A DNA stretch of 64,000 bases from Zygnema circumcarinatum SAG 698-1b (taxonomy: Eukaryota > Plantae > Zygnematophyceae). Shown piece after piece: positions 13,978 through 61,311 of this stretch. Each line of letters begins with the position of its first letter. Positions within the stretch are counted from its first letter, which is position 1. Made by a program: the position numbers and the translations under genes. The stretch covers positions 3,844,001 to 3,908,000 of the forward strand of contig CM074808.1 of assembly GCA_037447605.1 (NCBI GenBank), written 5' to 3'. The notes beneath the pieces are model-generated. The model ran no database searches and was not told the DNA's origin. It saw nothing but the letters and a program-made list of their open reading frames with translations.

Positions 13978-14062
13978 ATCCTGCAGCCCGCCCGCCCAGC
14001 CCTCTCCCCCTCCCTCTCCCACTCCCTCCCCCTCCCTCTCTCTTCCTGACCGAGCGGCAGCC

Positions 14063-31700: not shown

Positions 31701-34700
31701 GATGTGCCTGGACTTACATTTTTCTTATTGCTTTCGTGCCCCCGCAGGATTGCCCGGGAGAATCATCTTTCGGGCACTTTGCCGAAAAAAATGTTCCAAA
31801 TGACCGCCCTCACAACGCTGTGAGTTTCTACTACTGAACCCTAAGTTTTCCATGTGCTGAATCTATGGTACATTTTTTCTGGTTGCGCCTTTGTACAATT
31901 TATGGCTACTCTAACATAAAAAAAAATTCACATTTCCTTCCCTTCCCGCCAACCCCTTCCCCTCTTTCCGCACCGAAAATCTCCTTCTCCTTCTCCTTCA
32001 CCCCCAATTTTCAAGTTCCTTGTTTTTTTATGGGAGCAGAGATCTGCATCGTAACTTTATTGAGGGCGAACTTCCATCTGACATTTCACCTAATATTGAA
32101 TATATGTAAGTGGTTTTAGCCCTTCTTTTCTTTAAACCTTGTGCTTCGACCCGCTCCTGCTTTCTTTCTCTCTCTCTCTCTCGCTCTCACTGTCATTCTG
32201 TCCGGTTTATTTTGCATATTTTTCGTTCTCATTGCTTTTGTCTGTCCCCAGTTTGTTCTAACGAGTGAACTTTTGTTGCTTTTGTGAAACAGAGATTTGG
32301 GTAGAAATAATTTTTCAGGGACGATTCCGAAGGAATGGTTTTCACTCTCTCAAATCACACAAATGTAAGATGCCATTTTTTAAAAACCTATTCTTTTTGG
32401 CAATTCTTTCAAGCTGGCGTCCATAACCTTTCCAGTATTCTTTTTCCTGTCCCATTCCCCCTCTTCTTTCCCTTTACTTATTTTTTCTTTTGTTATGGTG
32501 GGGCGGGGGGGAGATAATTACTTTATCAGCAAAGCATCAATGAACCGTTTGGTTGGCACTCTTCCTTCGGAGATAAATAATCCGACTCTTCTCAAACTGT
32601 GAGTAGGAGGAGAGAATTGGAGAACCTGAGGCTCCTCCCGCTCTCCCATCCTCCCCCTTCCTCCATCCGTCCCTCCCTCCGTCCGTCCGTCCCTCCCTCC
32701 CCCTCTCACTCCCTCTCCCTCTCTCTCTGTCTATTCACAACTCCCTCTCCCTCGTCTCTCCCTTCCCCTACCCCTACTATCCTCCTTCCACTCTCAGCCC
32801 CCGTCTCCTCTCCCCTTCGCGCCCTCCTCCACCCTCTCGTTTCATCCTCTCTATTCCCACTCCTCGTTCCTCTCTTCCCTTCGGACCTCCTCGCTGTCCC
32901 CTCCGTGCTCTCTCCTCCCACTCGACTTCTCCCTCGCCCACCTTTCCTCTCCTCCTTCTCTGAGCCTCCCTCTCCTCTTCCCTCCTCTCTCTTCCCTCTC
33001 CGTTCCTCCCTCTCTTGTCCCCTCTCCCTGCTCTCTCCGCTTCCTCTCTCTCCCCCAACTCTCCTCCGCTATCCTGTACCATCTCCCCTCTCCCCTGGCT
33101 CCTCTCACCTCCCTGCACTCACCTCCCTCTCCTCTCCTCTCTCCCTCCCCCCCTCCCCTCCCAATATTTTGCCAAAAGTGGACTCATTTTATCGTGGGTG
33201 TGTGTAAAGAATGTATACACAAGATTGAAGTCTTTAACATAATTCCTTTTTGTTTACTTTCTACAGGGATTTTTCATGGAACAATCTGACCGGAAATTTC
33301 CCGAGAAATATCACTCCGTCTCTCATTTCGATGTGAGTTTCTTTCTTAAAGCAGCCCGGATTCGTTTTTGGCTGACCATTTTGCGTGATTTTGACATACC
33401 GTTTGAGATGTTTCCGTTGGCGGGCATTGCAGAGATTTTGGAAGAAATAACCTTTCTGGGCCGCTTATTTTCAACTCTACCACTGAGAAGAAACTAAATC
33501 TTCAAACCTTGTCAGTTTTTTTTCCCATCAGAAAGCCTTGTTTATCGAAAAAAATCAATACCGGTCTTGCTTGAATTTAGAGAGCTGTCTTCAAATGGCT
33601 TTATTGTGATGATCCATCCGACAAAGATTTTGGAAAACAGGCAATTCGTGACACATCCTAAATCTAATCAGGGAGGGGAAGGGAGGGGAGGGAGAGGGAC
33701 GAGGAGGGAGGCGAGGGAGGTGGAGGAGAGGGGGGGAGAGGGTGGGGGAGGGAGTGGGGGGAGGAGAGGAGGAGAGTAGGAGAGAGAACACTCTAATTCG
33801 GGAAGGGGAGAGTGTGCCGGGGACGGGACGGGGAGGGTGGAGGGCGGAGAAGGAATGGGGGGGAAGGGGGCGGGGTAGGGAGGAGGAAGGAGGGAGGAAG
33901 GAGGGGGTGGAGGAGGGGGAGGAGGTGGGGGGAAGGGGGAGTGAAGGGGAGGAGGTGGAGGAGAGGAGAAGAAGGGCGGGGTGGGGGGAAAGTGGGAGGG
34001 ACGAGGAGGGAGAGGTGGAAGGTGGCGGAAGAGGGGGGGGAGAGTGTGGGGGAGGGAGTGGGGGGCGGGAAGGGGAGGAGGTGGGGATGAGGAGAGGTGG
34101 GGAGAGAGTGTGAGAGTACAGACATACTGCCGCTCGCCATAGAGTGCGATGCTCCCTATCTCAACTTCTAACCTTCATGCTCATTTCCTTTGNNNNNNNN
34201 NNCCCCCCCCCCCCCCCCGTTCTATGTGCTGCAGACTGTTGTCATGGAATCAGTTCAACGGAACGGTCCCCGACATTCTCTCCGTAGCTCCCGACCTTGC
34301 CTGCACCACTCTCCGCTATAACCAATTTTCCGGAGAAGTTCCGCCCTCGTTAGTCAACACCTCCTCGGACATCACCGTGCAGTAAGCCTATCAGAAACTC
34401 TAAAATCCTTAGTGACCGTAAACCTAAAAATATAGTTTCAAAAAAAAAAAAGAAAAAAACTATAACCCGAAAGACCCAAAAAGGCTATATAGTCGCACGA
34501 ACCCTACCGTTCTCACAGCTATAAATCTGTCTTTTAATTACGAATATGTGTTTTTTTTCCTGCCCGCAGACTGGCAGGAAACCCCCTCTGCAATTCGACC
34601 GAAAATTTGCTCGACAGACCGACCCAAATTGCGTGTATATTCATGAATTTATCGAAAGGTTTTGTGGCAAAGCCTTTCTGTGCGAACGGATTGTGCGCAG

Positions 34701-37700
34701 AAAATGAGTCTCCGAATTTTTCGATTTGGACGCAGAACGGAGGCTGCATGTGCTCGACTCCGTTGACAGTTGTCATGTCCATGGAAAGCCCTTTGTTCTC
34801 CGTTTTCAACAAAGCCATCAAAGTGCGGCTTGAAGCGGGGCTCGCTGCTCTCCTTCAACTGACTGCGTCGCAGGTAAAAACATAAAGAGAGAGCGAGAGG
34901 GAGAGAGAAAAAGAGAGAGAGAGAGAGAGAGAGTGAGAGAGAGAGAAAGAATGTGAGAGAGAGAGGAGAGAGAGCGGCAAAGGGGTAAGGGAGAGCGGAA
35001 GGGGGAGAAGGAGAGGGAGAGGGAGAGGGAGAGGGAGCGGGGAGGGGAGGGAGAGGATACACCACATTTCAGGGGGATTTTCCCAGTTTTTGATCTCCAA
35101 ACTCGTAGCGTTTCTAGTTTTCAATTTCAGAGATGATGCGAAGTTTCTTAGCTAAGAGTTCTAGAGTTTTGAGGGTTTTTAGGGTTGCTCCAACTGACGC
35201 AATTCTGCTACTGCCTACGTCTCTCTTCTCTACCCCCCACCTCTTCCTTCTTTCTCTGCCTCTCTCCTCCCGTCCTCTCTCAGGTCTACATTCCGTCGGT
35301 GAAGAGACGGATTGACTGGTTGTGGCTGGTAACAGTACGAGTGTTCCCCAACGGAACGGAGCCATGGAGTGTCAGTCAGGAGAAGTACATGGTGGAGATA
35401 TTGGAGAATAACGGCACTTCTCTGGGAGAATATTTCGGCCCTCTTACATTGCTGTCAAGCAGCCTCGACCAGAATTTGACGCTGGAAGGTCAGCCGGTTG
35501 ACCAGGCTTGATTTCCTTGACCTTGATTGACTTTCTTGACTTAGTTCACTTGGTTGACTCTGTTGCAACCGTCCCATCCCACAAAGTCAAGGTTTTTGAA
35601 GTTCTCAAGTTTTAGGGTTGAAAGTTGCGTTTCGCTGTGTAAATGGATGGCAGATTCTTTCAACCCCCCCTCTCCTCTCACTCCTTCGACTGTCCCACCC
35701 CCTATGCCTCCTATAGTGCCCCTACCCCCTCCGTCCTCAACATCTCCGCTAGGACGCTCTCCCACAGGTAAGCAGCAGTAAGCAAATAATCTTGTCGTGA
35801 TGTGGCAAGAATTTGTTGAATCGTGTCCGTCCTATAAGCGACATCTCCGTTAGAAATTGTTGAAATGAGGAAAACTGAGAGGCTAAGAGAGGGAGCGGAT
35901 CATTTAGCTCCCTGCCCATTAAGTTCGCCTTCAAATTCACTTTTCCTCGCCTCCATTCCTGAAACTTTTCGCGAACTTTTTTTGTCCTCCTTTCGTTTCC
36001 CCTTTTCTCTTTGCAGAGCCAAAGTTTGGACTATGGTGCGTTGTGCTCATCGTTGCTCTGTTTGCCCTCTTTTTGGGAGTCCTTGGCTGCTTCATCTGCA
36101 TATGCGTAAAAAAAGAGCGAGGTAAACCGAAGGGTAAGCAGTTTCACAGACGCGAAATCATGAGAGAGAGAGAGACAGGAGAGAAGTTCTTTATACAATG
36201 GTTCTTTTCGCTTTCTTAACCCTAACTCCAGTTCCTGTCCTATTACCTGCCCTAAATCCTGCTTTCCTCAGCCCTAACTTGAACCCTAACTGCTAGTCCT
36301 AATCCTGGCCTGACCCCCACCCCCACCTCGAATCCTAAGTCTGACATCTCCCTCTCCCGTCCTCAGCCCTCTCCTAACCCTAATCCTCACCTCTCCCTCG
36401 CCCTGCCCGCCCTTTCCCCTTCCCACCCCTGTCCCTAACCCTAATCCTCACCTCTCCCTGCCCGCCCTTTCCCCTTCCCACCCCTGTCCCTAACCCTAAT
36501 CCTCACCTCTCCCTGCCCGCCCTTTCCCCTTCCCACCCCTGTCCCTAACCCTAATCCTCACCTCTCCCTCTCCCTGCCCGCCCTTTCCCCTTCCCACCCC
36601 TGTCCCTAACCCTAATTCTCACCTCTCCCTCTCCCTCTCCCTCTCCCTCTCCCTTTCCCTCTCCCTCCCCCAGCGTCCTCCCCTCCCCCCCCCTCTCCCC
36701 CGGGCCTGGAGGCCCTCCTCCAGGCGCGGTTCGCGCAGGCCCTCCCCCTCTCCGCGGTGGCGGCGGCGACCGGCGGGTGGAGCCCCGCGCGGCGCCTCGG
36801 CGAGGGCGCGTACGGCGTCGTGTACGGCGGCGCCTCCCCCGCGGGCCTCCGCTGGGCCGTCAAGCGCGCCAAACCGCGCCCGAACCCTCACCCTCCCCCT
36901 CACCCCGACCCTGAACCCGCCGCCGCCACCGCGCAAACCCTCCTGCGCTTCCGGAACGAGGTGGGACTCGCGTCACGTCGCGTCGCGTCACGGCATGTTA
37001 CGTCATGTCATGTCACATCATGTCACGTCACGCTACTCTGCTCCCTCGTGTCACACACCGCATCACGTTGTTGGGTTATTATGCTACGCAATGCTGTGCT
37101 GTTATGATCGGCTATGTTATATTTGTCGTTTTATGTTATGTTGCGGTGGGTTGCGGCCCACCACATCATGTCACGTTAGTATGTCACAATATGTTCTGTT
37201 TTGCTGCATTGTGTCACGTCACGTCACGTCATGTCACACGAACTATTTCTGTTGTTTTGCACTACTGTGTCACATCACGTCACGTCAAGTTGCTATTTTT
37301 TGTGACACCAATGCTAAGTTTTCTGGTCGAGACATCGACTTCAACTTTTTTCAGGGTGGGTGGATTTTTCCTTACGTTTCTTTCCTGGGTTCCTTGGGGG
37401 GGGGCCCATAACGGGCGGGCAGGTGGAGGTAATTTCGAAGATGAACCACCGAAATTTGGTCCGCCTTTTGGGCTATTGCTGCGAGGGGGGCGAGCAGGTC
37501 CTTGTGTACGAGTTCATGCCCAACGGAACGGTCTACGACCGCCTCCATCGCAGAGGTCTCTGCCCTTAAACTCTCACACACAAGCCTACTCCTTTTCTCT
37601 ATCTCTCTCTCTCTCTCTCCCTACAAGGGCACTTCAGTCCCCTCCCTCCCTCCCTCCCTCCCTCCCTTACACGTCACTTCCTGTTTTGAAGAAACCCCCC

Positions 37701-39382
37701 TCTCATCTCTAAGCAAGGGCGCTTCACTCCCATCTCTCCCTCCCTCCATCCCGCTCACTTCCTCCCGTTTCGACCTCTCCCTTTCTGAACAAATGCCACT
37801 TCAATCCCCCCCTTCCTCCCTCTCTCACTTCCTCCTGTTTTGACCTCTCCCTCTCTAACCAAGCCCACTCTACTCCCCTGCCCTCCCTCCCTCCCTCCCT
37901 CCCTCCCTCCCTCCCTCCCTCCCCCTCCAGGTGGGCGCCCCCTCTCCTTCGCGGAGCGACTGCAGGTCGCTGTGGGGGCTGCTCAGGGCCTGCACTATCT
38001 CCACAAGTTTGCAAAACCCGCCATTGTGCACCGCGATATCAAGTCAGAAAATATCCTTCTCGATGCAGACATGCAGGTCAGCAAAAGGACAGTCTTTTTT
38101 CTCTCAAGATTCACGCTGCTCCATGTGAAGCAAACCTCTGGTCTGCTCCATTTCCTGACTTCTTTCATTCTCTTTCCGGTTTCGTTGCCGTTTCGGTCTG
38201 TTTCACTTCCGTTCGGAAAGTGTTTTCTGTTCCTCCGCAGGCGAAAGTTGCGGATTTTGGACTTCTTAAACATTTAGCTTCGGGAGATTCAGCCACTCCC
38301 ATGTCGACACGTGTCGCGGGGACCCCCGGGTACTTGGATCCGGAATACCACAAAACCTTCAAGGTGACGGCGAAGTCGGACGTGTACAGGTGCCGCCCCC
38401 TCCACTTCGGCCTTTCCGAAAAAAAGAAGCCGAAAAAACCGCTTAAAGAAACAAATCGTACAAAAAAAAAAAACGGAAAGCAAAGGTGGAGGGGTTCCCA
38501 CAAGAGGCCCACATCGTAATGAATGGTTGAAAATCGTTTTTACATATTTGAATTTGGAATTTAATAGAATGAACCTTTGCTTCCTTTCAAGACCACTTTT
38601 GTCAACGTTTTGATTCTTCATATTTTGCGCAGCTTTGGAGTGGTTTTGTTGGAGTTGATAACGGGGCGTACGCCGATCTTCTCCAATTCCATCAATGAGT
38701 CGGAGGATGTCACTTTGGTGAACTGGGTGCGCCCTCTCCTCCACTCTTTCCTCCTCTCCCTCCCCTTCTTCACTCCCTCCCTCCCCCATTACCTGGCTCT
38801 CCCACTCTCCTCTTCCCACTCTATCCCTCTATCCCCCACGCTGTCTCCGTCTGCCTACAGCCCTCCCCCTCCCCCTCCCCCTCCCCCTCCCNNNNNNNNN
38901 NCCCAACCAACCTCCTTCCCGCTTCGATTCCTTCATAACGATTAGTCGCCTCTCCCTTTCTTTCCTTTCAGGCCAATTCCTTCCTGACACGTGGCAAGCT
39001 GGAGCTCATCGTGGACCCCTCCCTGGGCGGCGCGTACCCCCCCGAGGCCCTCCGCGCCATGGCCGCCGTCGCCGCCATGTGCACGCAAACCACAAGCAGG
39101 CTCCGCCCCGACATGGCGGAGGTGGCGTGGAGGCTTGTGGAGATTCAGAAAGCGGCGGAGGAAAGCTTCAAGAACGAGAGCAGAGAGCTCGGGCGGACTG
39201 AAGTCACGGGCGGCGGCTCCTTCACTTCCAGTGGCTCGAGTGGCCACCCGTTGAGCCATGGGGGAAGTTCGTCGAAATCGTCGGAAAACGCGAGCTTGTA
39301 TTCGAACACTCGCGCGTATTTGGGGCATCGGGTGGTCGAAATTCAGAACAGTGCGGAGTGCATATTGGAGGGGGAGGGATGA
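25715..39382 (+). CDS. LRR receptor-like kinase 1 (one LRR per exon, Cys-rich juxtamembrane ectodomain, RD kinase; LRR-VIII-1-like)
   Basis: Signal exon 25715-25820; LRRNT exon 26271-26394 ([14 protein letters not shown]); about 16 phase-2 exons of 60-72 nt (27502-33640); double-LRR exon 34235-34381; LAGNPLC..C..C..C.CSTP exon; TM exon 36017-36121 ([28 protein letters not shown]); kinase exons 36674-36960, 37423-37555, 37931-38076, 38241-38389, 38633-38726, 38972-39382 with [30 protein letters not shown]. Subfamily is inferred. Confidence 0.9.
27890..28560. repeat. Interstitial degenerate plant telomere repeat (CCCTAAA)n in an LRR-RLK-1 intron
   Basis: About 670 bp of aaaccctaaaccctagaccc variants between LRR exons 27800 and 28587. 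Confidence 0.88.
36375..36635. repeat. 55-61-bp minisatellite, about 4.5 copies, seeded with CCCTAA
   Basis: Unit ctaaccctaatcctcacctctccctgcccgccctttccccttcccacccctgtcc, immediately before the first kinase exon. Confidence 0.88.
36970..37300. repeat. Degenerate 5-bp (GTCAC/GTCAT) microsatellite in a kinase intron
   Basis: cgtcacgtcgcgtc..gtcatgtcacatcatgtcacgtcac runs. Confidence 0.7.
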
Positions 39383-39922
39383 TGGGGGTGAAGGGTGAAG
39401 GGTTTTGCAGGTTGGGGTGGGGATGGAGTTCAGAGAATCGTGACAACGTCACGTCTGCAGAATGCTCACGCCGGCAGACGTCACGTTGTCGAGAATTCTC
39501 CGATTACCAAAATGTCATGTTGTCGATGTACCGTGTTTTTGTAGTCTGTTGGATGTCTGTTGTTTATCCTGGCGTTCCATGTTCAGTTATATGTCTTTAG
39601 TTTTACGCTGAATGTATGTCCAATGTTCCATGTCCCGTGTTCCTTTGGGTCTCCATGTGTGGTTGTTCAACAAATTCCCAAGGCAAGGTGGAAATCACGA
39701 GGTGGAGGGTGGAATCTGGATCCAGTTGATGATCCATATCAACATCAGGAATGCATCCACTCGTTTTCCCCGCAAATTTGCCCGTGTGGAAATCGAGAAT
39801 CCACGCTTTTGTTGATCTGCACCTGCGTCAGATTCCAACGTCCCTGACGATCTCCAAAATAGATTTTGACATTTGGCGCGCTCTGTGATAGAAACTATCA
39901 GAAAAAAAGCAAAATAAAATTT

Positions 39923-42312: not shown

Positions 42313-45300
42313 ATGTTTTCTGCGATGCTGCGCCGCTCCTCCTCTCCCTCTCCTCTTCCTCTCCTCCTCCTCGCCACTCCCCTCCTGTTCGCATGCTACC
42401 GTTCCGTTCTCAGTTTTCAGTTCGAGGATGCTTCCCAGCAGTTTCCAGAAAACAGCTCCGGGCGGCAGACCGAGGTACGTGCAGCTGAAAAAAAAAAGAA
42501 ATCCTTTTAAATCTATCTTTTGAGCCCAATGCATGTGATTCCGTCGGCTTTGTTTTACGGAACTGGCAACTGAACTGCCCACTCATGTGCATGGAGCCGC
42601 CTCTCCAATTTGCTGAAATTAGGGTTGAATTTTTTTTTTCCTTTTGTTCACTCGCTGCATTCTCCCTTCATAAGAATACGACGACATGGAAATGTTGTTA
42701 AACATGCACCATCAAAGGCTAGGTATTACTTTCAGATTTTGCCTCGTTTCCGGGTCACTCTCTCTCGCCTCTCCCTCCCCTCTCCCACACTGAGGCCACT
42801 CCCTTTTATAAATTACAGTTTCCGTTACAGTTATCTTTACGGTTATTCCGTCAGCTAGGGGTTCTATGCTTATGCCAGCTGGCATTCTCCCACTCATCAA
42901 CTTCTTTTTGTCCTTTTCTCGCTCCTCAAGTTCTCACTTATTGACTTCAAATATCCAGTTTTCGTTTCTCTCTCTTCATCATCCCTTCCTCTCCCCCCAC
43001 ATCGCGCTCTCTCGGTCCCTCCCTCTCCATCGATCCCTCTCTCGCTCTGCCTCTCCCTCTCCCTCTTCCTCTCCCTCTCCACCTCGTTCTCTCCTGCTTC
43101 CCTTCCCCTCTCTACCATCTTCTGTCTCTTGCTCTCCATCCTTCTCTTTCTCCCTTTCCCTCTCCACCACTCTCTTTCTCTCTCCATCCCTCTCTCGCTC
43201 TCTCCCTCTCCACCCCCTTCTCTCCCCCGGCCTCTCCACCTGTCTCTTTCTCTCCGTCTCCACTTCTCTCTCGCGCGCTACCCCTCTCCTGATCGTTTAA
43301 GTCCGACTGCATTAGGAGTTTCTCAGTCAGTTCCATGCGTCACATGTAACTGAAGTGCACTACTTATTTCAGTTATGAATTTCATACATTCTTGGGAGTT
43401 CAGGAAGATTTCGCTGCATTTGGATCCCACGCATGCTGTCGAGGGCGGGGCACTGGAAACTTTTTGAGCCTCACGGCTCAGCCTCCCTGCAGGTGGGTTT
43501 TCCTTCCGTTACAGTTGCAGTTTCGGTTTCAGTCTCAGTCAGTCCGGTTGTGGTGCAACTGGCGTCCATTGGAATCACCATTTAGTAGTTTCTTCAATTC
43601 CGTTGCAGTTACTGTTTCAGTCCAAACATAGAAGACGCTTTTGTTTTCAAGTAATTGGAGAGAGAGAGGTTCAATCTGACATGTGAACCACCAGGTTATG
43701 GAATCAGTTTAGACAAATTGAAACTGAAACTGTAACGATATTAGGTTACTTTTTCCGTTTTTTTTCAATTGTACGCATCTCTCTGACACTCATTTTAAGA
43801 TGAATCAGAGCATAGAAGTGATTTGGAACGAGTTGGTAGCAATACGAGTGTGGTAAAGAACTGGATTCCTTCTCGATGTTTCGTATGACAATACTTTTGT
43901 TGAAAGTGAATGAAACATGGGATCGCATGTCTGCTCAGTTCAGTTCAGTTCCGAATCATGGCGTCATAGAATAAGGTGGTACAGTCTGCAGCATATAAAT
44001 CTTGAGCTTTCAAAGTCCTCCTTCCCCAAATTGAGTCTGGGACCTTCTTTATCGGTCCGTAGATTAACATTGAACAGCACCAACCCCATTCCATCTATGC
44101 TCATGTTTGTTTATGGGGGATTTTTTTCTTTCTGTTTTTTGTCTTTGCAGTGCTTTCTGCTCTTGTAGTAATGGCCTCCTCCTCTCCTTCATTCACTGCC
44201 CCCCCGGCCTCCTCTTCAGTGAAGAACTCTCCGTTTGTGTGCCAGCTCAACAGTCTCTATGTCCCAGTTTAACGGTCGGTACAGACTCACTTCTCCTCCG
44301 CGGAGCCTCCCACAAAGCAGGAAACCCTTCCACCTCCGAAGAAGAAGAAGAAGAAGAAGTAGAAGAAGGCAGGACAAAGGAGTTTGAATGGAAAACGTTC
44401 GATCGTCGCGTCATGCTGGAGGGAGAGTCCTCTGCTCTCCCTCCCCCCCCTCGCCCTCCCTTTGGGAGACACCCTCCCGGAGTAGGAAAACATCCTCCAG
44501 GAGTAGGGAAACACCCTCCCGACTGCGGTAAGCGTCCTCCCGGAGTTGGTAAACATGGGCCAAATGTGGGAGGTTACCGCTATTGGAGCAGCTGCAAGAA
44601 GAGAAGGTTCAGGTCCCCCCCGCCCGGACCTCTGGTGAGCTGAGCCGCTCTCCCGACAGTAGAGGTAGTAGTGGTAGTGGTAGGGTAGAGGGGATGTATG
44701 TGGATGATGGATGTGTATGTTTATGGTGAGGTGAAGATGGTGTTGGGAGTTTTCTGGGATGAGAGGTGCATGAACAGCTTTGTGATGGTGATGTTTGGAG
44801 TGATGAAAGTGATGTAAGTTTCGCGTGGCGGATGATGTAGGATGTGTTGGGCTGCTGCGTTAACCGAGGAACCGGAACCTTTTCAGCCCTTAATAGCGAC
44901 CCCCCTTGCAGGTACAAACCCTAACTTTCCCGCACTCATGCTCTCCTCGCCTTTCTTCTTGTTGGTTTTCATTTTTCCTTATCTTATATGTGGTTTCTGA
45001 TTTACTTTAAGATCTCAATTTTTTGTTGCGTTTTTCACCGTCCGACTTCTGCTCCATCTTGGCCCATTCTGAAGAAACCAAACCCCCTTCCTCCCTTCTC
45101 TTTCCCTTGCTTTCCAGAGACTTCTGCGTGTGTGTGAACAGCACTTTGGTGGAATCCAACACATGCTATGCGGGCACATTGTTCAACGATGATCCGGAAG
45201 TTCAAAGCTGCGATTTTGCGCCCTACGTTTCTTGTGACAATGGGACCTATAATGTGCCCCCTCCGCCGCCCCTAAGGGGACTTGTGAGTTCAAATCTATT

Positions 45301-45801
45301 CAAACAGGGGTTTGACATTGTTCTATGTGAGGAGGGCGGGGGAGGGAGGGAGAGAGAGAGAGAGAGGGTTCTAGCGATTTTTTGTTCAAGATTAGCGAAG
45401 GAAGCACCTTGCCTGCTATACGTGTAGAAGGCATGACGATGTTTCCATGCGTTAGTTGCAGGTTTTGCTGGAAGTAGATCTTCTTGAACTGAGTTATACA
45501 AGTGGAAAACCGTGCTATGTGTTGTTTTCTGTCGTATTTCCTTGATTTTATCAGATTTTGAGTTTTTGATTTCCATGTTTTTGTTTTCCGCAGGCAAACG
45601 GAGGTGTTTTGACTACTGGCTATTACGCACGGAATGCGTTTGATTGTGATAATCAAACGGACTGTCCGTACTTGCCCTTCAGTTACACCAAACGGAACGA
45701 ATTTATGCGATTCACGAGCGTGACCCCACAGGCCTTTGTTGATTGGAGGAACCCTGACATCATGACACCTGTCAAACTGCAACAGGCGTGCCGTGAGTCG
45801 G

Positions 45802-45855
<54 letters not shown>

Positions 45856-48408
45856 TTCCCCTTCTCTCAATCATTTCCCTTACCTCTCCATCGGCCTCTC
45901 TCTCTCTCTCTGCCCTTTTCAGCAGCTTTCGTGTCCGTTTCTTTGACTAAGAAGGCCCATATTTGTCAATGTCTTGTGCTGATTGGTCTTCTTTTCGGTG
46001 GGTTTTTTTCTTTTTAAATTCACAGGGGCCTGCTGGGCCTTTTCGGCAGTAGCGGCTATAGAGACGGCTTTAGCGATTAATGATCGTGACGCTTCCTTGC
46101 GAGAGCTTTCCGTTCAACAGGTGTTGGACTGTCTATCTCCTTACGGAGACACATGTGACGGGGGGGATCCGAACGATGTGTTGGATTATGTGGCTCGCAT
46201 CAAGACCCTTGTACCTGCCTCCGTTTATCCGTTGAGAAATGCAAGCAACGTAACTGCCGGTACATGTGAATCTGCACTGGTGAGAATGGGACAATGGAGA
46301 AACTGACATGAAGCAGCTGAACTTGAGTAGAGTGAGAAAGGAGGGGAGTGGAGAGGGGTGCTGGGAGAGGAGAGAGGGGAAAAGGGAAAAGAGGAGAGGA
46401 AAAGAGAGGAGAGGAGATTGCTGTACGGTTAAAATGAGAAGGCTTAAGTGTTTTGAATGATTTGCTTGTTGGGCTGTGGGGAGGTGCATTTGAGCAGGTG
46501 GATACGTATGCTAACTCAACTGATGAGAGTACAGTGGTAGCGTGGGAGAGAGTGAGAGTCAATGACCCTCAGGCTCTCATGGCAGTAGTCTCATCCCAGC
46601 CGGCAATCATCGCTATTTCGACGCTTCTCGTTTCGTTCTTCACTTACAGCGGGGTAACCACAAGTTTGAACTCTTGTATCCACTTCTCTCATATCTAAAC
46701 AAACCTCCTCCTAGACAGAAAATAAAACACAAAACTGCCGTCAATTTTCATTTGCATGAAACCCATGTGGAGCTCCTTCTAGCCCATGAAATCCCCTCTT
46801 TACTGACCTGTAAAACCCCTTCAATGCTAATGAAACCCACCCGCTCTGCAGGGAATATACGAGCCGACGGGAGAATGCGGAGTGACCCCAACCCACAACC
46901 TAGTGGTGGTGGGCTACGGCGTTACTGGGCCATACGACAACCCCCCCAACAAGAAGTATTGGCTCGCCCGTAACTCGTGGGGGACGGAGTGGGGCGAGGC
47001 GGGGTACATGCGCATCGCCCGCTATGACGTGGGCGCGGGCGTGTGCGGAATGCTCGCAGTGGCGCCCGTGTACCCGGTCGTGCGGCCGCTCACGTACACG
47101 GGCCACCAGAACAGGAGGGTGAACGCGCGGCTCAAGCTGGCGTACGACCCTAACTGTGAGTAGGAGGGAGGGGGAGGGGGGGGAAGGGGGGGGGAGATGT
47201 GGGAGAGGGGGAGGGGAGAGGGGGAGGGGAGAGGGGAGGGAGAGAGGGGGGGAGGGAGAGGGGGGGGAGAGGGGTGAAGGGAAGGGGGACAGGGGGGTGA
47301 GAAGGGGCGGAGAGTGGAGGGCGAGGCGGGGAGGGGTGGGGGGGAGGAGGGAGGGGGGGAAGAGGGTGGAGAGAAGGGGGATGAGAGGGAAGGGCAAGAA
47401 GAAGGGGGGAATGCGAGAGTGGGGAGGAGAGATGGGGGGAGTGGGAGGGGGGAGAGACGGTGAATGTTGGGAAGATGTTAGGAGAGAGGGGGTAGAGACG
47501 GGAAGAAAGTGGGAATGAGAGTGGGGAAGAAGGGAGGGGAAAGCGGGGGGGAGGAGGGGGAGGGGGCAAGAGACGAGTGGGAGATTTGAAGGTATAGTGA
47601 AAGAGGAGAGGGAGTAGAGGAGACGAGAGTGAAGAGAGAGGGAGCGAAGAGGAGGCGAGAAAGGGAGGGAGGGTGAAGTGGAGAGGGAGAGTTAAAGTAG
47701 AAGAGAGTAAAGAGAAGAGGGAAGAGGACAGGTGGAGATGAAGGAAAGGGGTAATGAAGAGAAGTAAGTAAAGAAGAGACGAACTGTGGAGGATGGTATG
47801 TTATGGGAGAGACCAGAAAAGAGAGAGAGCAAAGCAGAAAACAAGTGGGTTGTGAAATTCGAGAGTGGCGACAAAGGGAGGCAGAGTGGAAGTGATGCGA
47901 GAAGAGAAGGGAGCCGGAGGGGGGAGGGGGGGGGGGGGGAATGGGGAGGGTGAGAGGAATTGAAGGATTGATTGAGGGATTGAAGGAGAAAAGAATAGGC
48001 ACGAAGGGAGAAGAGTAAAGAGAGTGTAGAAGATTTACACAGACAACATTAAAGCTTGAACACTAGAGCGATAATATCCCAGCGCCTGCAATTTCTATCT
48101 TTGAGCGCTTAAACTGAAATTTCTGCTCTATGTGGATATGGTTTCAGATAGGAGAACTCCTCCCCCTGTCTACCTCCGCCCCCCTCCCTCTCCCCCCCGA
48201 CATTTTGGTGGGAGGCACCCTCCCGGAGTAGGAAAGAGACCTCCGGGAGTGGGAAGCCACCCTCCTGACCAGGGGGACCACCCTCCGACTGTTGGAGACC
48301 ATCCTCCCGAATATGGGAAGCATCCTCCCGGAATTGGAGATCGGATTTATCCACGTAAGGAGATAAAGAAAAGGAGAGGGGGGAAGGGGGGGGGGGGGNN
48401 NNNNNNNN

Positions 48409-48442
<34 letters not shown>

Positions 48443-49451
48443 GTGGAAGTCATCTTATGTTGGGATTCAGAGGCGTTCCTGATGTGGGTTTTCTTGGGGG
48501 GGTCGGAATTTAGGGCTCTGACTGTTGGCACAGCCTTGCTTATGCCTTGTTTGTGTGATGCTTTTTAGTTTGTATGGTCCCTTTTCTTTGGTCCTTTGCG
48601 TGCATGTGATAGTTACGTACGTATTTTATCTGATGGTCCCATGTCCAATTTGCATTTGAATTGTGCAGCTACTCCTTGTAACGGAGGGATTCCCGACAAC
48701 ACATGTGGTGCGGGCACATGTGTGCCCACATCCGGTAACACGTCGTATATCTGCTCATGCCCGAGCGGCTATGTGGATGTTCCCAATACAGTCACAGGGG
48801 AACATGTATGCGCACTTGGTAAGCTCTCTCAAATCCAACATGAAATCCCCTATTCCGTTGCAGTTACAGTTCACGGCAACCGTAGCAATTGAAAGGGGTA
48901 GTCGGAGCTTTAGTCAGCTGTCCTTAGTGGATTTTTGGCTTGTGAGATTTGAGGTTATTGATTTTTGCCGTTGTTGTTTTTTGGGCTCATGCTGCAGTGG
49001 ACGTTTGCTTTTCGACTACTTACAACCCGTGCGGAGTTGGGAAGTAGGATCACTCTCCTTCTCCCTCTGTTCTCTGATGTTTGTATCAAAGGAAATGTTG
49101 CCTCCTTTCCTCCCTCCCCTCCTCCCTCCTTTTCCATGTCCTTCCTTTCTTTCCTTTAACTCTCTCCAGCTACTCCCCATTCTCAATCTCTTTCTTCACT
49201 TTCGCTCCAATCCCTCTCTCCCTATCCAGCTTTCCCCCCGTCTTTCCCCTCCCTCTCTAGCTTCCCCACCATCTTCCTCTCCCTCGCCAGCTTTCCCGCC
49301 ATCCCCCTAACCCTCTCCCTCCCCAGTTTTCCCCCATCTCAAGCTTTCCCCCCATCTCTCTCTCCCTCTTTTCCACTAGCTCCCCCATCTCCCTCCTCCT
49401 CCCTATCTTTCCTCCGCTTCCATCTCTCTCCCACTTCCCCCCTCCATCTCG

Positions 49452-49499
<48 letters not shown>

Positions 49500-49510
49500 T
49501 TCTCTCTTTC

Positions 49511-49569
<59 letters not shown>

Positions 49570-51159
49570 CTCTCTCTCTCCCTCTCAGCTCTTCCTCTGT
49601 GTGGTACGCAGATGCACCAACGACGGCTTGGGCAGCTACAGCTGTTCATGCCCCTCCGGCTTCTCCAGCTACGCCCGCAGCTCAGATGGAAGCCTGACTT
49701 GCGGCCCAGGTGAATGCCACAGAAAACCCTAATATCCATTATATATGTAAATATTTTAATAACCTATATGCTCCTCAAACATCACAAGTTGATGTTTTTA
49801 ACACCTCCGAGCGGCGTTTTACAGTTTTTTCACTGTAGAAATACTTTTTGGGTCAGTTGAGCATGTACAAATACTTGTGCCGGGAGGCATTTGGAGCTGA
49901 AGTGGAGATTTTTAGAGTTTTTAACGGTTCCATGTTCGCATGCGGTTCCGTGATTGTGTGCAGAGGACGGCCGCTCGCTTTCAATAGGGAACAACACATG
50001 GAACGTTACTGAAAACGGACAGACTTGTGCGGAAATTGAGGAGGCAACGGGACTCACAAATGAGCAGCTTTTAGCTTTAAATCCAGTAAGAACATGTTCA
50101 ATTGCTTGGGCATCATGTTGGGCTATGTTATACATTCTTTATATATTATATTTTGGACTGTAAAGATACTCATTTTTGCAAGTATTCTTTTCTGAGTAGT
50201 TGAGAAAATGCTTGAATCTGGAGCATGATTTCTTATTATGGGTTGTTTCTGCTATTAGTACTCTGCTTTTCCTTACTGGGGTGACTTTTCAATGCAGGGT
50301 CTGGAGTGTGTGGAGGGAGAAACATTGAAGCCGTTTGAAATTGTGGCAATCGGACCGGTTGCGATTACAAACGACTGTGCTGTCATATATTCCACCACAA
50401 AAGTAAGCCTTCAAAGAAAACAATCCTCTGTAATAATCATATATTCATCTTCAAATCCGTATTGTTTCGCATTTTTTTATTGAACATGGAAAAACTCCTG
50501 TATTCTGCTGCTTTTTTTTTCCTTTTTTGACATTTCCTCTACCTCCTGTCCTGACTCCACTCTCACTCCCTCCACCTCTCCTCGCTCCCTCTGTCCCCTT
50601 ATCATATTTGCAGACAGACACATGCAATTCTATCATAGATATGTTCAGTGTAGGCAGCACGGTGCTTACGACTTCCGGATTTGAAGCGCTGAATCCGACC
50701 AGCGGAATTGACTGCGGAGTTGGGACCTCAGCTGTGCCCGCAAACATTCCGGTGGGTCTCTCTCTCTCTCACTCTCTCTCTCATCTTTACTTCCCTCTCG
50801 CCCCCCACACTCCTCTTCCTCTTCAGCTGACTCCTCAGGATTTTGTAAACTGCAAGGGCCAATCAACCCCTACCTGCTCACAAGAAGTCGGACCAATATT
50901 TTCTTTAAAAACCATTTCAAACCCAGAATCTCGAAAAGTAAGAAACCTGAAGTCCCATATCTGTTAACTTTTCGAATTCTTTTTGCAGGTTTGCGTAGCC
51001 CCTGGAAACGTGAGTTTGGTGCAGGCCTGCGGACTGTACTACACGATTCCGGAGGACAAGGAAGTGTCCTGCAGCCTCCTGTACGAAAACACAACAACGC
51101 TCGACTTCTTTTCGCTAAACCCGGGAATCAACTGCGACAATTTGCTGCCCGGGCAGGAG
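42313..51159 (+). CDS. Secreted multidomain protein B, paralog of A: SP - CBM14-like x2 - papain C1A - PPGxGK linker - EGF x2 - LysM x3 (3-prime end unresolved)
   Basis: Exons 42313-42474 (signal-like, less certain), ~43404-43492, 44151-44634, 44841-44911, 45118-45283, 45594-45792, 46026-46279, 46498-46653, 46852-47155, 48148-48354, 48669-48818, 48998-49043, 49612-49709, 49964-50085, 50298-50402, 50614-50751, 50989-51159. Motifs VDWRNPDIMTPVKLQQAC|RACWAFS, THNLVVVGYG, YWLARNSWG. The terminal exon was not found; an N-gap lies at 51297-51306. Confidence 0.83.
45594..47155 (+). other. Papain-like (C1A) catalytic domain of gene B, 4 exons
   Basis: VDWR, QQACRACWAFS, LSVQQVLDC, TCDGGDP, HNLVVVGYG, RNSWGTEWGEAGYMRI. 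Confidence 0.93.
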
Positions 51160-52427
51160 GTGAGGATGAATTTGGTAGCAAGTTATAGGGGGGCGGGGAG
51201 AATAAGAAAGAGAGAAAAGGCAAAGCATTTGTTTACAGTGGTGCTCAGAACTATTTATTTCTGCCTCCTCCCTCTCCCTCTCCCTCTCCCCCTCCCNNNN
51301 NNNNNNGGGGGGGGGGGGGGGGGGGGGGGAGAGTGTCTAAGGTTGCATTGTTTCCACACTCAGGAAAGGATGTGGCTAAATAAGTTGAGGTGGGTTCTCT
51401 TGATGTTGGTATTTGGGGTATAGATCCTGAACCCTTGTGGCCTTGGGGCCTGAGAGGAGGGATAAGGGGGATGGGGGGAGGTAAGAGTGGGAGTGGGAGA
51501 GTTGGGTCTTTACGAAAGGTTGTGGGTTTGTTTAGTAAGTGAGGAGACGGAGAGAGAGGGAGACGAGAGGGAGACGAGAGGTGGGAGATTCAGCAGCAGG
51601 CAGTGTTCTAAGGAGCGGAGGTCGCTGTAGAGGTGTGTGAGAGAGAGAGAGGGAGAGAGGGAGAGTGAGAAAGGGTGTGCCTGATTATTTTTTTTCTCTT
51701 ATTTATACATTGTAGGGTGAATGACGCCAAATAAGGTTTCATGAAAAAATTCTAGTTTCAGATTTGCCTAGTTTGTATTTGGGCCCCGCCCTCCTTCCCT
51801 CCCGCCAGAAGTCAGCCAGTCAGGGCAGGAAATAAGGCAGAATTTCAGCAAAAATTGATGCTTAATCTGCTAGGTGGGGCAGGTTCTCTATTAGGCGCTG
51901 AGATTCTTTTCCACGATGACGTAATTTTCAACTTATTTTCCTACGCATTCTGTGTCCCCTTCCTGTTTCTATCGCTTTTTTTTTCCGCAGCATGTGCGTC
52001 TCTGATGTGCTGTTAAGGGATGAGGGTCTGCTGAAGTTATAGCGGCTGTCTTTTTTCCTCTCCCTCTTTTTCTTTTTTTTGTCTTACTTTAGGCGTCATT
52101 TTAGCATTCAAACACTCCACGCTGTGGAATAAGCAAAAAGGAAAAGAAGTGGTAAACATCTTAAGGAATTCACATTGCACGTGAAAGGGGATGTGACACC
52201 TACAATTGACCCACCCACAGATGATGTTTTCAGCGAGGAACTGTACACACAACGTAGAAACTAACCCTCCATAACATTCCAAACAAATATAAACAAAAAA
52301 TAAAAAGAAAGGGATAGTCCTAAACACGCCCTAGTCCTTCTAACAAAATTTGGGAAACATAACAGAAATTCCACAATTAAGTGTGCTGTCCCTTTTGAGC
52401 GAAGTCAAGTCTGCAGCTTCAAAGGGT

Positions 52428-55913: not shown

Positions 55914-58900
55914 TCAATGCACCACCTTCTCCACCTTCTCCTCTCCCACCTCCCCCATGTGATCGCTCGTGAACAAGTCCAAATTCTCCAACAAGTGCAC
56001 CACTTGAGCCATGGTCGGCCGGTCGGTCGGCTTCCTCGATGTGCACATGAGCCCAATCTTGAGCGCCCCCAAAAGTTGACCCTTCTCGTGTTCCGCCAAC
56101 TTCAGGTTCGGATCCACCGCATCCATCGCCGCTCTCTTGATCCACAACAGACTGACCCAAGCGGCCAATCCGGACTCGCCAATTGTCTTGTCTGTTGGGC
56201 GCCTACCTGTGAGCACTTGGAGGATCACAACTCCAAAAGCGTAAACATCACTTTTGGGAGTTAACCTCTTTTTGAGAACATACTCCGGAGCAAGGTAACC
56301 GACCGTTCCTGAAACCGCTGTTGACATGTGGGTTTTGGTGTCAATGTCGAGCTCCTTAGCAAGCCCAAAATCTGCAATTCTGGGCTCCATTTCACTCTCA
56401 AGCAGAATGTTGGCGGGTTTAATGTCGCGATGAATGACGGCTGGTTGACAGTCGTGATGAAGATATTTGAATCCGCGGGCAGCTCCAACAAGCACATAGT
56501 GCCGCATTTGCCAGTCCGAAAAAACTTTCTTCTGCCCGGTGAGGTAGCTGTCGAGGTCTCCTCCAGAAACAAACTCATAGATGAGAAGGGCCTCTTTTCT
56601 GCTGATATAGCTGCCAATCAGAGTCACCAGATTCCGGTGCCGCAGCTGCCCCAAAGTTTTTGTCTCTGCCCGAAGCTCCTTCAGGCCCTGCCCGCTGCCC
56701 GCTGCCAAACGTTTGATCGCCACTTCCAATTGGCCGTCTCCTATGGTCGCTCTGTGGAACAGAACGGAACAGAAACAGGACATGGAGCAACACTCCCAGT
56801 TAGCTTCCGAAAAGAAAAAGTTGAAGTGGAGCCCCAAAAAGGTCCTGAAGTCCTTTCAAATAAATAAATAAATTACCCAATGACAAATGAATTTTAGAAC
56901 ACTGAATCAGAGTGGGAGTTATCCTGTCTGAAGCCGCCCTCATATAGAAGCCCAAAATTCATACAAACTTGACCTCTGCACCTATTAAGCATGAAGCCCC
57001 TTCACTGCCTCATGCAACACAGATCAAAACCTTGCAAGCTCACAGAACTTTGAAACAGTTTAAACTATGAAAAAGATTCACTGTTGTACTGTGAACGTAC
57101 CGGTAAACCGAGCCGAACCCACCGACTCCCAACAGATTTGCATCGCTGAAGTTACCCGTTGCTTCCAAAATCGTTCGATAAGTCAAGGGGAATCCAATCT
57201 TGTGATATAAAACGAGCTCTCCCCCGTCCGGCCCATACTTCCGTATATGCCGGATCACGAAAAATGCAATGGCCAATAGGAAAATTCCACAGACCGCGCT
57301 TCCAATAGCGATTCCCACAATTGCAGCTGTTGACAGATTATGTGACGTGGGGCAGGAGGACAAGGGAAACCCACAAAGGGCAGAATTGTTCACATATGAG
57401 CTGCTCAAAAAATCCGTTAAATTTCCACCGGGCAGATGCCCAGACAAAAGATTGCTTGAAACGTTCAAAAATTCCAAATTTCTGAGACCAGCGAGTTCTG
57501 GGGGAAGAGTGCCGTTGAACTCGTTGTTGGAAATATCAAGGACCAAAAGGTTTGTCAGGTTGCCCAACTCGGCGGGCAGCTGCCCTGAAAGAGAATTTTC
57601 CTCGAGTTGAAGGTACTGCAAGCTCGTCAAATTGCCGATGGAGTTGGGGAGTGAGCCGGAGAGAGAGTTTGAGCTCAGATCAAGTGCTCTTAAATTTTGC
57701 AGCTGCCCGAGAAGAGGGGGGATGCCACCTGTCAGACTGTTCCTGGAGAGGTTTAAAGTGAACAAAGCAGAGTCGGATGAGAAGTTTGTCGGAAGACTTC
57801 CCCCAAAAAAGTTGTTTTCCAAGGACACCACCTTCAAACTTTTCATCTGCCCCAGCGTTTCGGGCAGCGTGCCATTCAACGAATTCTCGCCGAGATAGAC
57901 GTTATTGAGATAAGAAAGAGCACTGCTTCCTGCAGAGATTGGACCCGTTAACTGATTTGTCCTTAAATCTAAAGTTCGAAGGCTCGAACTGTTCAAGAGG
58001 GAAGGCGGAATTACTCCACTGAGCTTGTTATTGCTTATTCGAAGGTACGCGAGTTTCGTATAGTTTCCGAACTCCGTCGGAATCTCTCCTTCTAAGAAAT
58101 TATTGGAAAGGTCAACATTGACAATACTTTTACGGGGAAGGAAATTGGAGGGAATTTGGCCTGAGAGAGAGTTCCCTGAAGCGTTGAAGGTGGTAAAGCC
58201 CGGCGACTTCTGTCCAAATGCGGGAATACTTCCGTTGAACTGATTGTTCTGCAGCTCAACATCCTCCAGATATCCCAACTTAAGCATGCTTGGAATGGGC
58301 CCACTAAACTGATTATCAGAAATGAACACGCTCTTTAAGCTAATCGATCCGTTGAATATTCTCGGTCGTAACTGTCCAGAAAGCTGATTTGAAGCGAGGT
58401 TCAATTCCAAAGGGGCCCCAGCACTTGAGCAACAATCTGCCAAACTTGCAGGGATGTTTCCTGTCAAATCATTGAAACTGAGGTCCAGAACTGAAAGAGA
58501 ATTGAGCCCTGCGAAATCCACATTTATGGTTCCATTCAACGAATTAGAAGAAAGAGATAACAGCTCCAAGTAAGGGTAGTCAGAGAACTTCGGAACGGGT
58601 CCCTCCAACTTGTTGCCCGAAAGGTCGAGCGATGTCAGATTTCCCATAGAAGTTCCATACTGCGCCGGGATGATACCTGAGAACATGTTGTTGCTCAGAA
58701 CAACATTCGTCAAGAGCGACGGATTCACAAATTCAGGAAGGCTTCCAGTGAACTGGTTATAGGATAAATCGACGGATACGAGGGAGTTTAAGGTGCTAAA
58801 CACTGTCGAAATTGGGCCCGTCAGATTGGTATTGCCAAGCCAGAAAAGCTGAAGATTCACAAGCTTCGAAAACTCCGCTGGAACTGAACCCGACAATGTG

Positions 58901-59856
58901 TTCTCACTCAGAACTAGATTGGTCAGTCCAGTGCATTTGCTAAGCTCTGCGGGAATCGGTCCTTCAAAATTTGAAGAAAAGAGGGCCAAAGCGGAGAGTT
59001 TTGTGAGGTTGCCCAACTCGGTGGGCATCATAATGTTCCCGAAATCGGTATATGAGAGAGCGAGGACCGAAAGGTTGCTTAGTTTAGTGACTGAAAAGAG
59101 GAAATCTGCGGACCCCTGCAGCCTGTTTCCTGAGAGCCTCAAATCCTCCAAATGCGAGAGACTTGCAATAGATAGGGGAAGAACGCCTGTGAGATTGTTG
59201 TATCCCAAATTCAGCGTCGTCAACTTTGTCAGGTTCGCGACAGTCTCCGGAATGAACCCATTTAAGAGGTTACCTTCCAGATTCAAGCTTTCCAGGCTCG
59301 ACAAATTCCCAATATATTCCGGGATGCTGCCATTGAAAGAGTTTCCTGAAAGGTCGAGCGTTTTGAGCTGGTCTAGCAATAGCAACTCTACAGAAATAGG
59401 GCCTTCAAGACCGAAATCTGTAAGCTCCAGCATAGTCACTCTCCCTTTCGTGCAAGTCACCCCTGACCAAAGACATAAGTCCGAGACTGTAGAAGCAGTC
59501 CAATCCAAATACTCATCAGGATCCACCAAACTCTCCTTAAACTTTAACAGAGCGTTGGCATCTGCAACAGCTGCTGTAGTAGCAAGAATCCTCCTTATTC
59601 CTTCTTCTCCTGCAGAGTCGCTGGTCTCTCTCCCTCTCCCTCTCCCTCTCCCTCTCTCACTCCCTCCTCCTCCTAACTCCCTCTCCATCTTCTGGACCTC
59701 CCAACGCGCCCTCCCGCGCTCTCCCCCTTTCCTGCAACGACCTCCTCTCTCCCCTCCTCCGCCATGGCTGACTCTCCTCCCATCCGCCTGAGTGAGACCA
59801 GAAACGCAAATAATAGCAAGCAATGCTACAACAACCAGGACTGTCCTGCCTGACAT
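55914..59856 (-). CDS. LRR receptor-like kinase 2, ~1197 aa, about 28 LRRs in one exon, RD kinase with RPK2/TOAD2-like signature
   Basis: Exon 59856-57101 (signal MSGRTVLVVVALLAIICVSG, LRRNT W..SDLCLWSGVTC, LRRs, NNSALCG cap, TM AAIVGIAIGSAVCGIFLLAIAFFVI) spliced in phase 2 to 56751-55914 (AIKRL, HRDIKPAN, DFG, GTVGYLAPEY). Confidence 0.93.
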
Positions 59857-60336
59857 TATACGTCTGTTCTAGAGAGATATGGAACGAACGAGACAGAGAG
59901 AGAGAGAAAGAGAGAGAGAGAGAGGGGAGGGAGAAAAAGAAGGGCGGTGAAGCGGCAACCAACCCTAAGCTCGAAGGCGCACCACAACTACTCCAGAAAT
60001 CTCTAGAATGAAACAGAAGCCTTCAACCAACGCCTCTATATTCCGATATACTGTGCAGAAATTTTCCAAAAGCACCGTGTATTACCAACCAGAACTGCTC
60101 CTGCACTTTCACTTCCTCCCAAATGTCGCCTGCTTTGCTACATCCACCAAAACAGGCCTTACCGTAAACTCATGCACGAATGCAATAAACTGCACTCTTC
60201 ACCTTTCCTAAACCTCAATCAAATAACGCAAATAATTTTCCTGCAGGCCGACCCCCATGGCCTGCTCCTCTCCCTCCCTCCCCTTCTCGCCAACCTCCCC
60301 CCAGTCAAACCCTACTTGGACCTGCCTTCCTGCAGG

Positions 60337-61178: not shown

Positions 61179-61311
61179 GCTTGAAGCTTGCTTGCAGGAA
61201 TGCGGTACTTTATGTGGCGAGGTGACGATTAAGGTTTGGAGAGTATCTTTCTGGTTGTAATATCGTCTGGTTCAGGTCAGTTTTTAATTAATTTGTTTAT
61301 TCCTTGAAACC

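Follow-up and report, generated by a model that had tools for sequence, protein, structure and literature searches.

A second, diverged gene for a putative chitin-targeted papain-like protease with CBM14, EGF and LysM modules in a zygnematophyte alga

We analysed a 64,000-nt stretch of the Zygnema circumcarinatum SAG 698-1b genome (contig CM074808.1, positions 3,844,001 to 3,908,000; hereafter the window), which contains two related genes, A and B, on the same strand. Gene B, the subject of this report, is probably a real, intact and constrained paralogue of gene A, and its sequence predicts a secreted, chitin-targeted C1A protease which carries CBM14, EGF and LysM modules. The rebuilt gene lies on the + strand and has 17 exons and 16 introns, all of the introns being of GT-AG type, and the coding sequence of 2922 nt (974 codons, zero stops) makes up 33% of its stretch. 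Its start and end agree with the coordinates 42313-51159, where an earlier sequence-only reading of the window had placed a second copy of gene A. From the N-terminus, the predicted domain order is a likely signal peptide, two CBM14 modules, a heptad Pro-rich linker, the C1A protease, a short heptad linker, two EGF modules and three LysM modules.

Gene B and its paralogue gene A

When gene B was searched against the window with tblastn, one other copy was found, which is gene A (~1990-12270, same strand). B is a paralogue of A by descent, as their intron positions and phases are common and their domains are colinear. The sequence-only reading had described B as repeating the domain order of A with matching intron phases, and the phases are equal in all introns common to the two genes (15 of 15), for which the chance expectation is about (1/3)^15. 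Most of these introns (11 of 15) fall in the identical alignment column, and the other 4 lie within 1-6 columns of each other in gappy regions.

The paired exon lengths (A/B, in nt) are 252/162, 92/89, 1105/484, 71/71, 193/166, 196/199, 248/254, 138/156 and 265/304 for exons 1-9, and ~3881/207, 150/150, 46/46, 101/98, 122/122, 120/105, 138/138 and 177/171 for exons 10-17, while the last exon of A (309 nt) is without a counterpart in B. Five lengths (71, 150, 46, 122 and 138 nt) are equal in both genes, exactly as had been read earlier, and the remaining differences are all multiples of 3, save that of A's stalk exon. The amino-acid sequences had been called strongly diverged with Cys and catalytic residues kept, which is what the alignment gives: A and B are 46% identical over 866 aligned codons, 44 Cys are common to both (of 50 in A and 49 in B in aligned columns), and the papain Gln/Cys/His/Asn set is kept in the two genes.

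The stalk exon of A (5469-9349) deserves a separate remark. It is 3881 nt long, which is not a multiple of 3, though phase 1 is needed on either side to join its neighbours, and a stop lies at 6457-6459 in the frame which agrees with the EGF1 exon. This frame problem reflects either an unmodelled intron or acceptor, or assembly indels in the repeat.

A relative with the same fusion, and the age of the duplication

An exhaustive HMMER search with exon 9 of B led to P0002, a protein of 976 aa which is 67% identical to B in that exon. P0002 is encoded by one uninterrupted 2931-nt open reading frame (ORF) on contigs of 4.0-4.4 kb in four run assemblies (SRR8128902, SRR8128906, SRR8128907 and SRR8128908), and its coding sequence is identical in all 4 of them. 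Since gene B has 16 introns and the P0002 contigs are intronless, these contigs are best read as messenger RNA (mRNA). CBM14, C1, EGF and LysM are thus held together in a single ORF of four independent run assemblies, so that the fusion is not an assembly chimera, as the sequence-only reading had argued from the two gene copies.

P0002 shares 59% identity with B and is colinear with it from the first linker through exon 17, with no indel at any of the covered junctions (14 of 14). It contains one CBM14, an N-terminus unrelated to that of B, a second linker which is short as in B, and a terminal LysM4 segment. The GC content at third codon positions (GC3) is 0.32 in P0002 versus 0.47-0.70 for the genes in the window, and this value outside the window range suggests that P0002 comes from another species, a relative of this alga.

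Besides, unnamed proteins with the C1-EGF-LysM core are found in Mesotaenium and in several Closterium species, one of the Closterium proteins being headed by leucine-rich repeats (LRR). In P0015 (Closterium sp. Naga37s-1, CAI5502628.1; 1898 aa), the order LRR-C1-EGF-LysM is present twice, and the annotation has probably merged two tandem members of the family into this entry. For the CBM14 plus pre-protease module, P0002 was the only sequence found among 5.8 billion sequences of the length range searched, and the ESM Atlas returned generic C1 clusters only, with scores of at most 0.79.

B and P0002 form a short-linker subtype and A is a long-stalk subtype. The heptad repeat (K/R-H/R-P-P-G-V/E-G) occurs on both sides of the CBM14-2 and protease unit in B (44440-44600 and 48190-48350) and also in P0002. 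Gene A has ~13 heptad copies upstream (2484-2820) and a different Pro/Ser stalk downstream.

To describe the divergence, we used the proportions of non-synonymous (pN) and synonymous (pS) differences. Overall, pN is 0.41 and pS is 0.76 (saturated) between A and B, and by domain pN ranges over 0.33-0.46 and pS over ~0.75-0.89; for B and P0002, the values are 0.26 (pN) and 0.82 (pS). As pS is at or above saturation in both comparisons, no numerical ratio of non-synonymous to synonymous rates (dN/dS) can be given, and pN was compared with pS and a relative-rate test was used instead. Of the per-domain dN/dS which the sequence-only reading had proposed after aligning A and B, what stands is that pN is well below pS in the domains. 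Generally, the non-synonymous change between A and B is far below saturation, and the only stretches which look unconstrained are the signal/N-terminal one (pN 0.59, pS 0.64) and a short one after C1. The LysM3 exon pair (A 12103-12279, B 50989-51159) has a pS of 0.51 versus ~0.75-0.89 elsewhere, and its A copy is very GC-rich; codon bias or an old conversion tract could be the source of this low value.

The maximum-likelihood tree is (A,(B,P0002)), with support of 100/98 for B plus P0002 and 93/94 for all three together. This topology, with A outside, and the saturated pS support an A/B duplication which would predate the split of B and P0002, in agreement with the old duplication proposed before. 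With A as outgroup, Tajima's relative-rate test counts 40 unique changes in B and 46 in P0002 (p 0.52). Across A, B and P0002, 37 of 40 Cys columns are invariant, and one Cys kept in A and P0002 is lost in B. Since B is no faster than P0002 and its Cys are kept, B is not evolving like a decaying copy. Purifying selection on B, which had also been proposed, is supported by this equal rate and by the domain pN and pS values given above.

Domain content, predicted function and rival explanations

Pfam searches of B were run on single exons, and full domains were scored on the relative P0002. The cut-offs are 22.1 bits for CBM_14 (PF01607), 20.7 for Peptidase_C1 (PF00112), 21.5 for EGF (PF00008) and 20.9 for LysM (PF01476); the scores of single B exons are given in Table 1. 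For Peptidase_C1, exons 7 and 9 of B are both above the cut-off and P0002 reaches 162 bits. Cys25, His159, Asn175 and Gln19 (papain numbering) are found in all three sequences (A, B and P0002) and line up with those of bromelain (6u7d). An I29 propeptide (PF08246) was found neither in the B exons nor in P0002, although the same search recovered it in ordinary relatives.

For the six-Cys CBM14, the CBM14-1b half of B passes the cut-off, the A halves score 23.0 and 25.1 bits, and the whole domain of P0002 scores 31.0 bits (profile positions 1-53). The CBM14-2b half of B aligns Cys for Cys with A and P0002. A PDB sequence search with the CBM14 module gave chance matches only. The EGF exon 11 of B is above the cut-off, as is its A counterpart (24.9 bits). 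The LysM half-domain exons of B stay below the cut-off because an intron splits each LysM, and the colinear region of P0002 is well above it. In the AlphaFold model of the P0002 EGF-LysM tail (predicted local distance difference test, pLDDT, 63), there are four beta-alpha-alpha-beta units. In a Foldseek search with this model, the fungal chitin-binding effector Ecp6 was the top match, and plant LysM receptor ectodomains and EGF arrays came next; the template modelling scores (TM-scores) are low (0.12-0.23), as expected for a flexible, multi-domain model.

With these domains, the product would be a secreted protein which may attach to chitin or related N-acetylglucosamine (GlcNAc) polymers by way of CBM14 and LysM. 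Such polymers are not known from the walls of these algae, and for that reason the likely targets would be bacterial walls or the outer surface of a fungal or chytrid parasite. Once tethered there, the cysteine protease may cut proteins at the target surface, either as direct defence or for the release of signals, and the Pro-rich linkers would serve as spacers.

Two assembly gaps bear on gene B. The gap at 48399-48408, with a G-run on both sides, is 45 nt away from the exon 10 donor and 260 nt away from the exon 11 acceptor. Exon 10 leaves 1 nt and exon 11 needs 2 nt (a phase-1 intron), so the reading frame is continuous whatever the true size of this gap. The P0002 mRNA joins the counterparts of exons 10 and 11 directly, with conserved residues on both sides, and the gap changes the intron length only. 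At the 3' end, A and P0002 both continue beyond the exon-17 junction with a LysM4 segment, and a fourth LysM is expected for B in a terminal exon absent from the assembly. This exon is probably hidden in the gap 51297-51306, which looks like a true break because of its unlike flanks; the other 7 N gaps of the window each sit within a single kind of low-complexity run.

Several points weigh against an intact gene of the kind described. The exon model of B is a prediction from genomic sequence and from comparison with gene A and P0002. Exons 1-2 and CBM14-1 are without counterpart in P0002, and exons 1-3 were placed by gene A and phase logic only. A search of the window with A's last exon and the P0002 C-terminus found no terminal LysM4 exon of B. 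Neither B's own protein nor fragments of it were found in the large protein collections and length ranges searched, and exact look-ups of two single-exon B ORFs gave no match. Taken alone, the CBM14-2b half of B has no Pfam match, and the model of the CBM14 plus pre-protease segment has a pLDDT <50 and is hence uninformative on a propeptide-like role.

The lacking terminal exon and protein records are also what would be seen if B were a silent or decaying copy, such as a young pseudogene or a 3'-truncated gene, whose intact frame is a leftover. We consider this very unlikely, as all 974 codons and 16 splice-site pairs are intact, B has changed no more than an expressed relative and has lost a single conserved Cys, and the missing exon adjoins a gap with mismatched flanks. 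Besides, six runs of this organism, whose library type is only guessed but whose contigs (~40 Mb each) are of transcriptome-like size, hold 41-61% of gene B's sampled words. A narrower doubt concerns the 5' model, in which exons 1-3 might belong to a separate transcript or have other borders, so that B would have one CBM14 like P0002. The single CBM14 and unrelated N-terminus of P0002 and the long introns in this part (0.9 and 0.66 kb) speak for such an error, which we nevertheless regard as unlikely: two CBM14 modules are likewise laid out in gene A, where the introns agree in column and phase, all borders are AG/GT, the frame closes only with these exons, and CBM14-1b lies above the Pfam cut-off.

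It is somewhat more conceivable, though still rather improbable, that B is a real gene which serves the alga's own surface biology (wall remodelling, adhesion or mating) or whose product is a decoy or binding protein that does not cut. Wall and adhesion proteins typically contain EGF modules and Pro-rich stalks, and there is no recognisable I29 to hold the enzyme inactive. However, none of A, B and P0002 has lost the Gln, Cys, His and Asn residues, chitin-type binding modules of two different kinds occur together, and the LysM modules are most like those of a plant chitinase, the chitin-binding Ecp6 and plant receptors. That A and B are an assembly artefact, either a duplicated haplotype or a chimeric join, has hardly any probability left in spite of the many gaps in low-complexity DNA, given a protein identity of 46% with saturated silent sites, linker and stalk sizes and introns which differ between A and B, and the same domain order in an independent mRNA. 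A haplotig, other assembly duplicate or chimera was accordingly rejected, being contradicted by the A/B divergence and the P0002 ORF. The reading of B as a constrained paralogue with a chitin-targeted protease product is the one which we prefer.

Known systems, feature coordinates and neighbouring genes

Nearest to the catalytic domain are the plant papain-like proteases (C1A: bromelain, ananain, ficin and papain), to which P0002 matches with E ~1e-40 (6u7d and 6y6l). The Gln, Cys, His and Asn residues are kept here as in these enzymes, and the protein appears, from its sequence, to be secreted as well. The C-terminal granulin domain of RD21-type enzymes is a precedent for an extra C-terminal Cys-rich domain. 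In contrast to plant C1A and RD21 enzymes, no I29 was detected here, two CBM14 modules stand upstream, and two EGF and three to four LysM modules stand downstream instead of granulin. Within the same algal class, the zygnematophyte C1-EGF-LysM proteins (Closterium CAI6005512.1 and GJP32645.1, Mesotaenium ME000158S01650, and the LRR-headed Closterium CAI5502628.1) share a core in which the protease is followed by two EGF and four LysM modules, and they can be aligned lengthwise. Their identity to B is only 28-40%, no CBM14 was found in them, some are LRR-headed, and they are unnamed in databases.

LysM chitin binders have tandem Cys-bearing LysM modules as predicted here, and the LysM3 of P0002 has a sequence match to the LysM of fern chitinase-A (4pxv, 5bum). 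For Ecp6 (4b8v) and the ectodomains of plant CEBiP, CERK1 and LYR, the match is one of predicted fold, at the low TM-scores and with the pLDDT of 63 mentioned above. The LysM array here is the tail of a protease, whereas in known systems it belongs to a kinase, a receptor anchored by glycosylphosphatidylinositol (GPI), a chitinase or a free effector. Peritrophin-A/CBM14 proteins, such as insect peritrophins, chitinase C-terminal domains and fungal Avr4, have the same six-Cys PF01607 module. What differs here is the host, a green alga, the phase-2 intron which splits the module, and the fusion to a protease; by sequence, the module matched none of the solved CBM14 structures.

In the literature searched, no paper on the CBM14-papain-EGF-LysM architecture was found. 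B is a new variant among papain-like proteases, and it matters chiefly as confirmation of the family: together with the mRNA of the relative, this second copy, which evolves independently, turns a surprising single gene model into a conserved family maintained by selection. In land plants, immunity depends centrally on chitin perception through LysM and on secreted papain-like proteases, which act as separate players. It is possible, though we hold it with considerable doubt, that a family of secreted proteins which unite all parts needed for attack on a surface exists in the algae nearest to land plants. In these proteins, plant-type chitin-recognition modules (LysM and, here, CBM14) would be physically linked to a plant-type immune protease under interchangeable CBM14 or LRR heads. 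If so, chitin recognition and papain-like protease action would once have been coupled in one polypeptide against fungal and chytrid parasites. A fusion of this kind in the lineage sister to land plants offers a testable entry into how algae handle chitin-bearing parasites, and it also bears on the way in which such modules came together before the colonisation of land by plants.

The coordinates of all features are collected in Table 1. The first halves of the two CBM14 modules (exons 2 and 4, 43404-43492 and 44841-44911) were located by phase bookkeeping.

Table 1. Positions of the predicted exons of gene B, of its gaps and of gene A in the window, with the evidence for each
Feature	Position	Strand	Evidence
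B exon 1: start codon and hydrophobic N-terminus (likely signal peptide)	42313-42474	+	Open frame from ATG, GT donor, ends in phase 0; hydrophobic residues ~13-28; weak alignment to A exon 1
B exon 2: CBM14-1 first half, 89 nt (A 92 nt)	43404-43492	+	Phase requirement, likeness to the 71-nt exon, AG/GT borders, fitting frame; intron column and phase as in A
B exon 3: CBM14-1 second half, acidic run, heptad repeat linker	44151-44634	+	Pfam CBM_14 23.3 bits (cut-off 22.1), residues 2-37; repeat part colinear with P0002
B exon 4: CBM14-2 first half, 71 nt, length as A 3292-3362	44841-44911	+	AG/GT borders, comparison with A
B exon 5: CBM14-2 second half	45118-45283	+	Cys pattern aligns with A and P0002; alone no Pfam match
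B exon 6: pre-protease segment with two Cys, and C1 start up to the oxyanion Gln	45594-45792	+	Alignment to A and P0002; no I29 propeptide match
B exon 7: C1 part with catalytic Cys (CWAFS)	46026-46279	+	Pfam Peptidase_C1 55.2 bits
B exon 8: C1 middle part	46498-46653	+	69% identity to P0002; colinear
B exon 9: C1 part with catalytic His and Asn	46852-47155	+	Pfam Peptidase_C1 60.4 bits; 67% identity to P0002
B exon 10: short Pro-rich heptad-repeat linker, at the position of A's ~3.9-kb Pro/Ser stalk exon	48148-48354	+	Phase 1 in and out; 75% identity to P0002 linker
B intron 10, with assembly gap 48399-48408 in a poly-G run	48355-48668	+	Exon-exon junction backed by colinearity with P0002 mRNA
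B exon 11: EGF1, 150 nt, length as A 9490-9639	48669-48818	+	Pfam EGF 24.3 bits (cut-off 21.5)
B exon 12: EGF2 first part, 46 nt, length as A 9820-9865	48998-49043	+	Comparison with A
B exon 13: EGF2 second part, 98 nt (A 101 nt)	49612-49709	+	Alignment to A
B exon 14: LysM1 first half, 122 nt, length as A 10631-10752	49964-50085	+	Weak Pfam LysM 13.2 bits on half domain; orthologous P0002 region 49.3 bits
B exon 15: LysM1 second half and LysM2 start	50298-50402	+	Alignment to A and P0002
B exon 16: LysM2, 138 nt, length as A 11444-11581	50614-50751	+	Beta-alpha-alpha-beta unit predicted in P0002 model
B exon 17: LysM3, ends at an intact GT donor, phase 0	50989-51159	+	Pfam LysM 15.3 bits on part domain; P0002 counterpart matches fern chitinase-A LysM 4pxv
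Assembly gap, probable site of B's terminal exon	51297-51306	.	Only 1 of 8 window gaps with unlike flanks (CT-rich before, G-run after)
Gene A, paralogue for comparison: 18 exons including ~3.9-kb stalk exon and terminal LysM4 exon 12655-12963	448-12963	+	Modelled from sequence

Retention of intron 9 of B would stop the frame two codons past the donor (47156-47165), which would give a protease-only protein without EGF and LysM.

The window is eukaryotic, intron-rich DNA with much low-complexity CT/GA sequence. Besides A and B, it contains genes for a glutamate-cysteine ligase (GCS2; ~14000-19000, +), a receptor-like kinase (26000-39400, +), an LRR receptor kinase (55917-59868, -) and a U-box/ARM ligase (61288-63414, +), and gene B is located between the two receptor-kinase genes.

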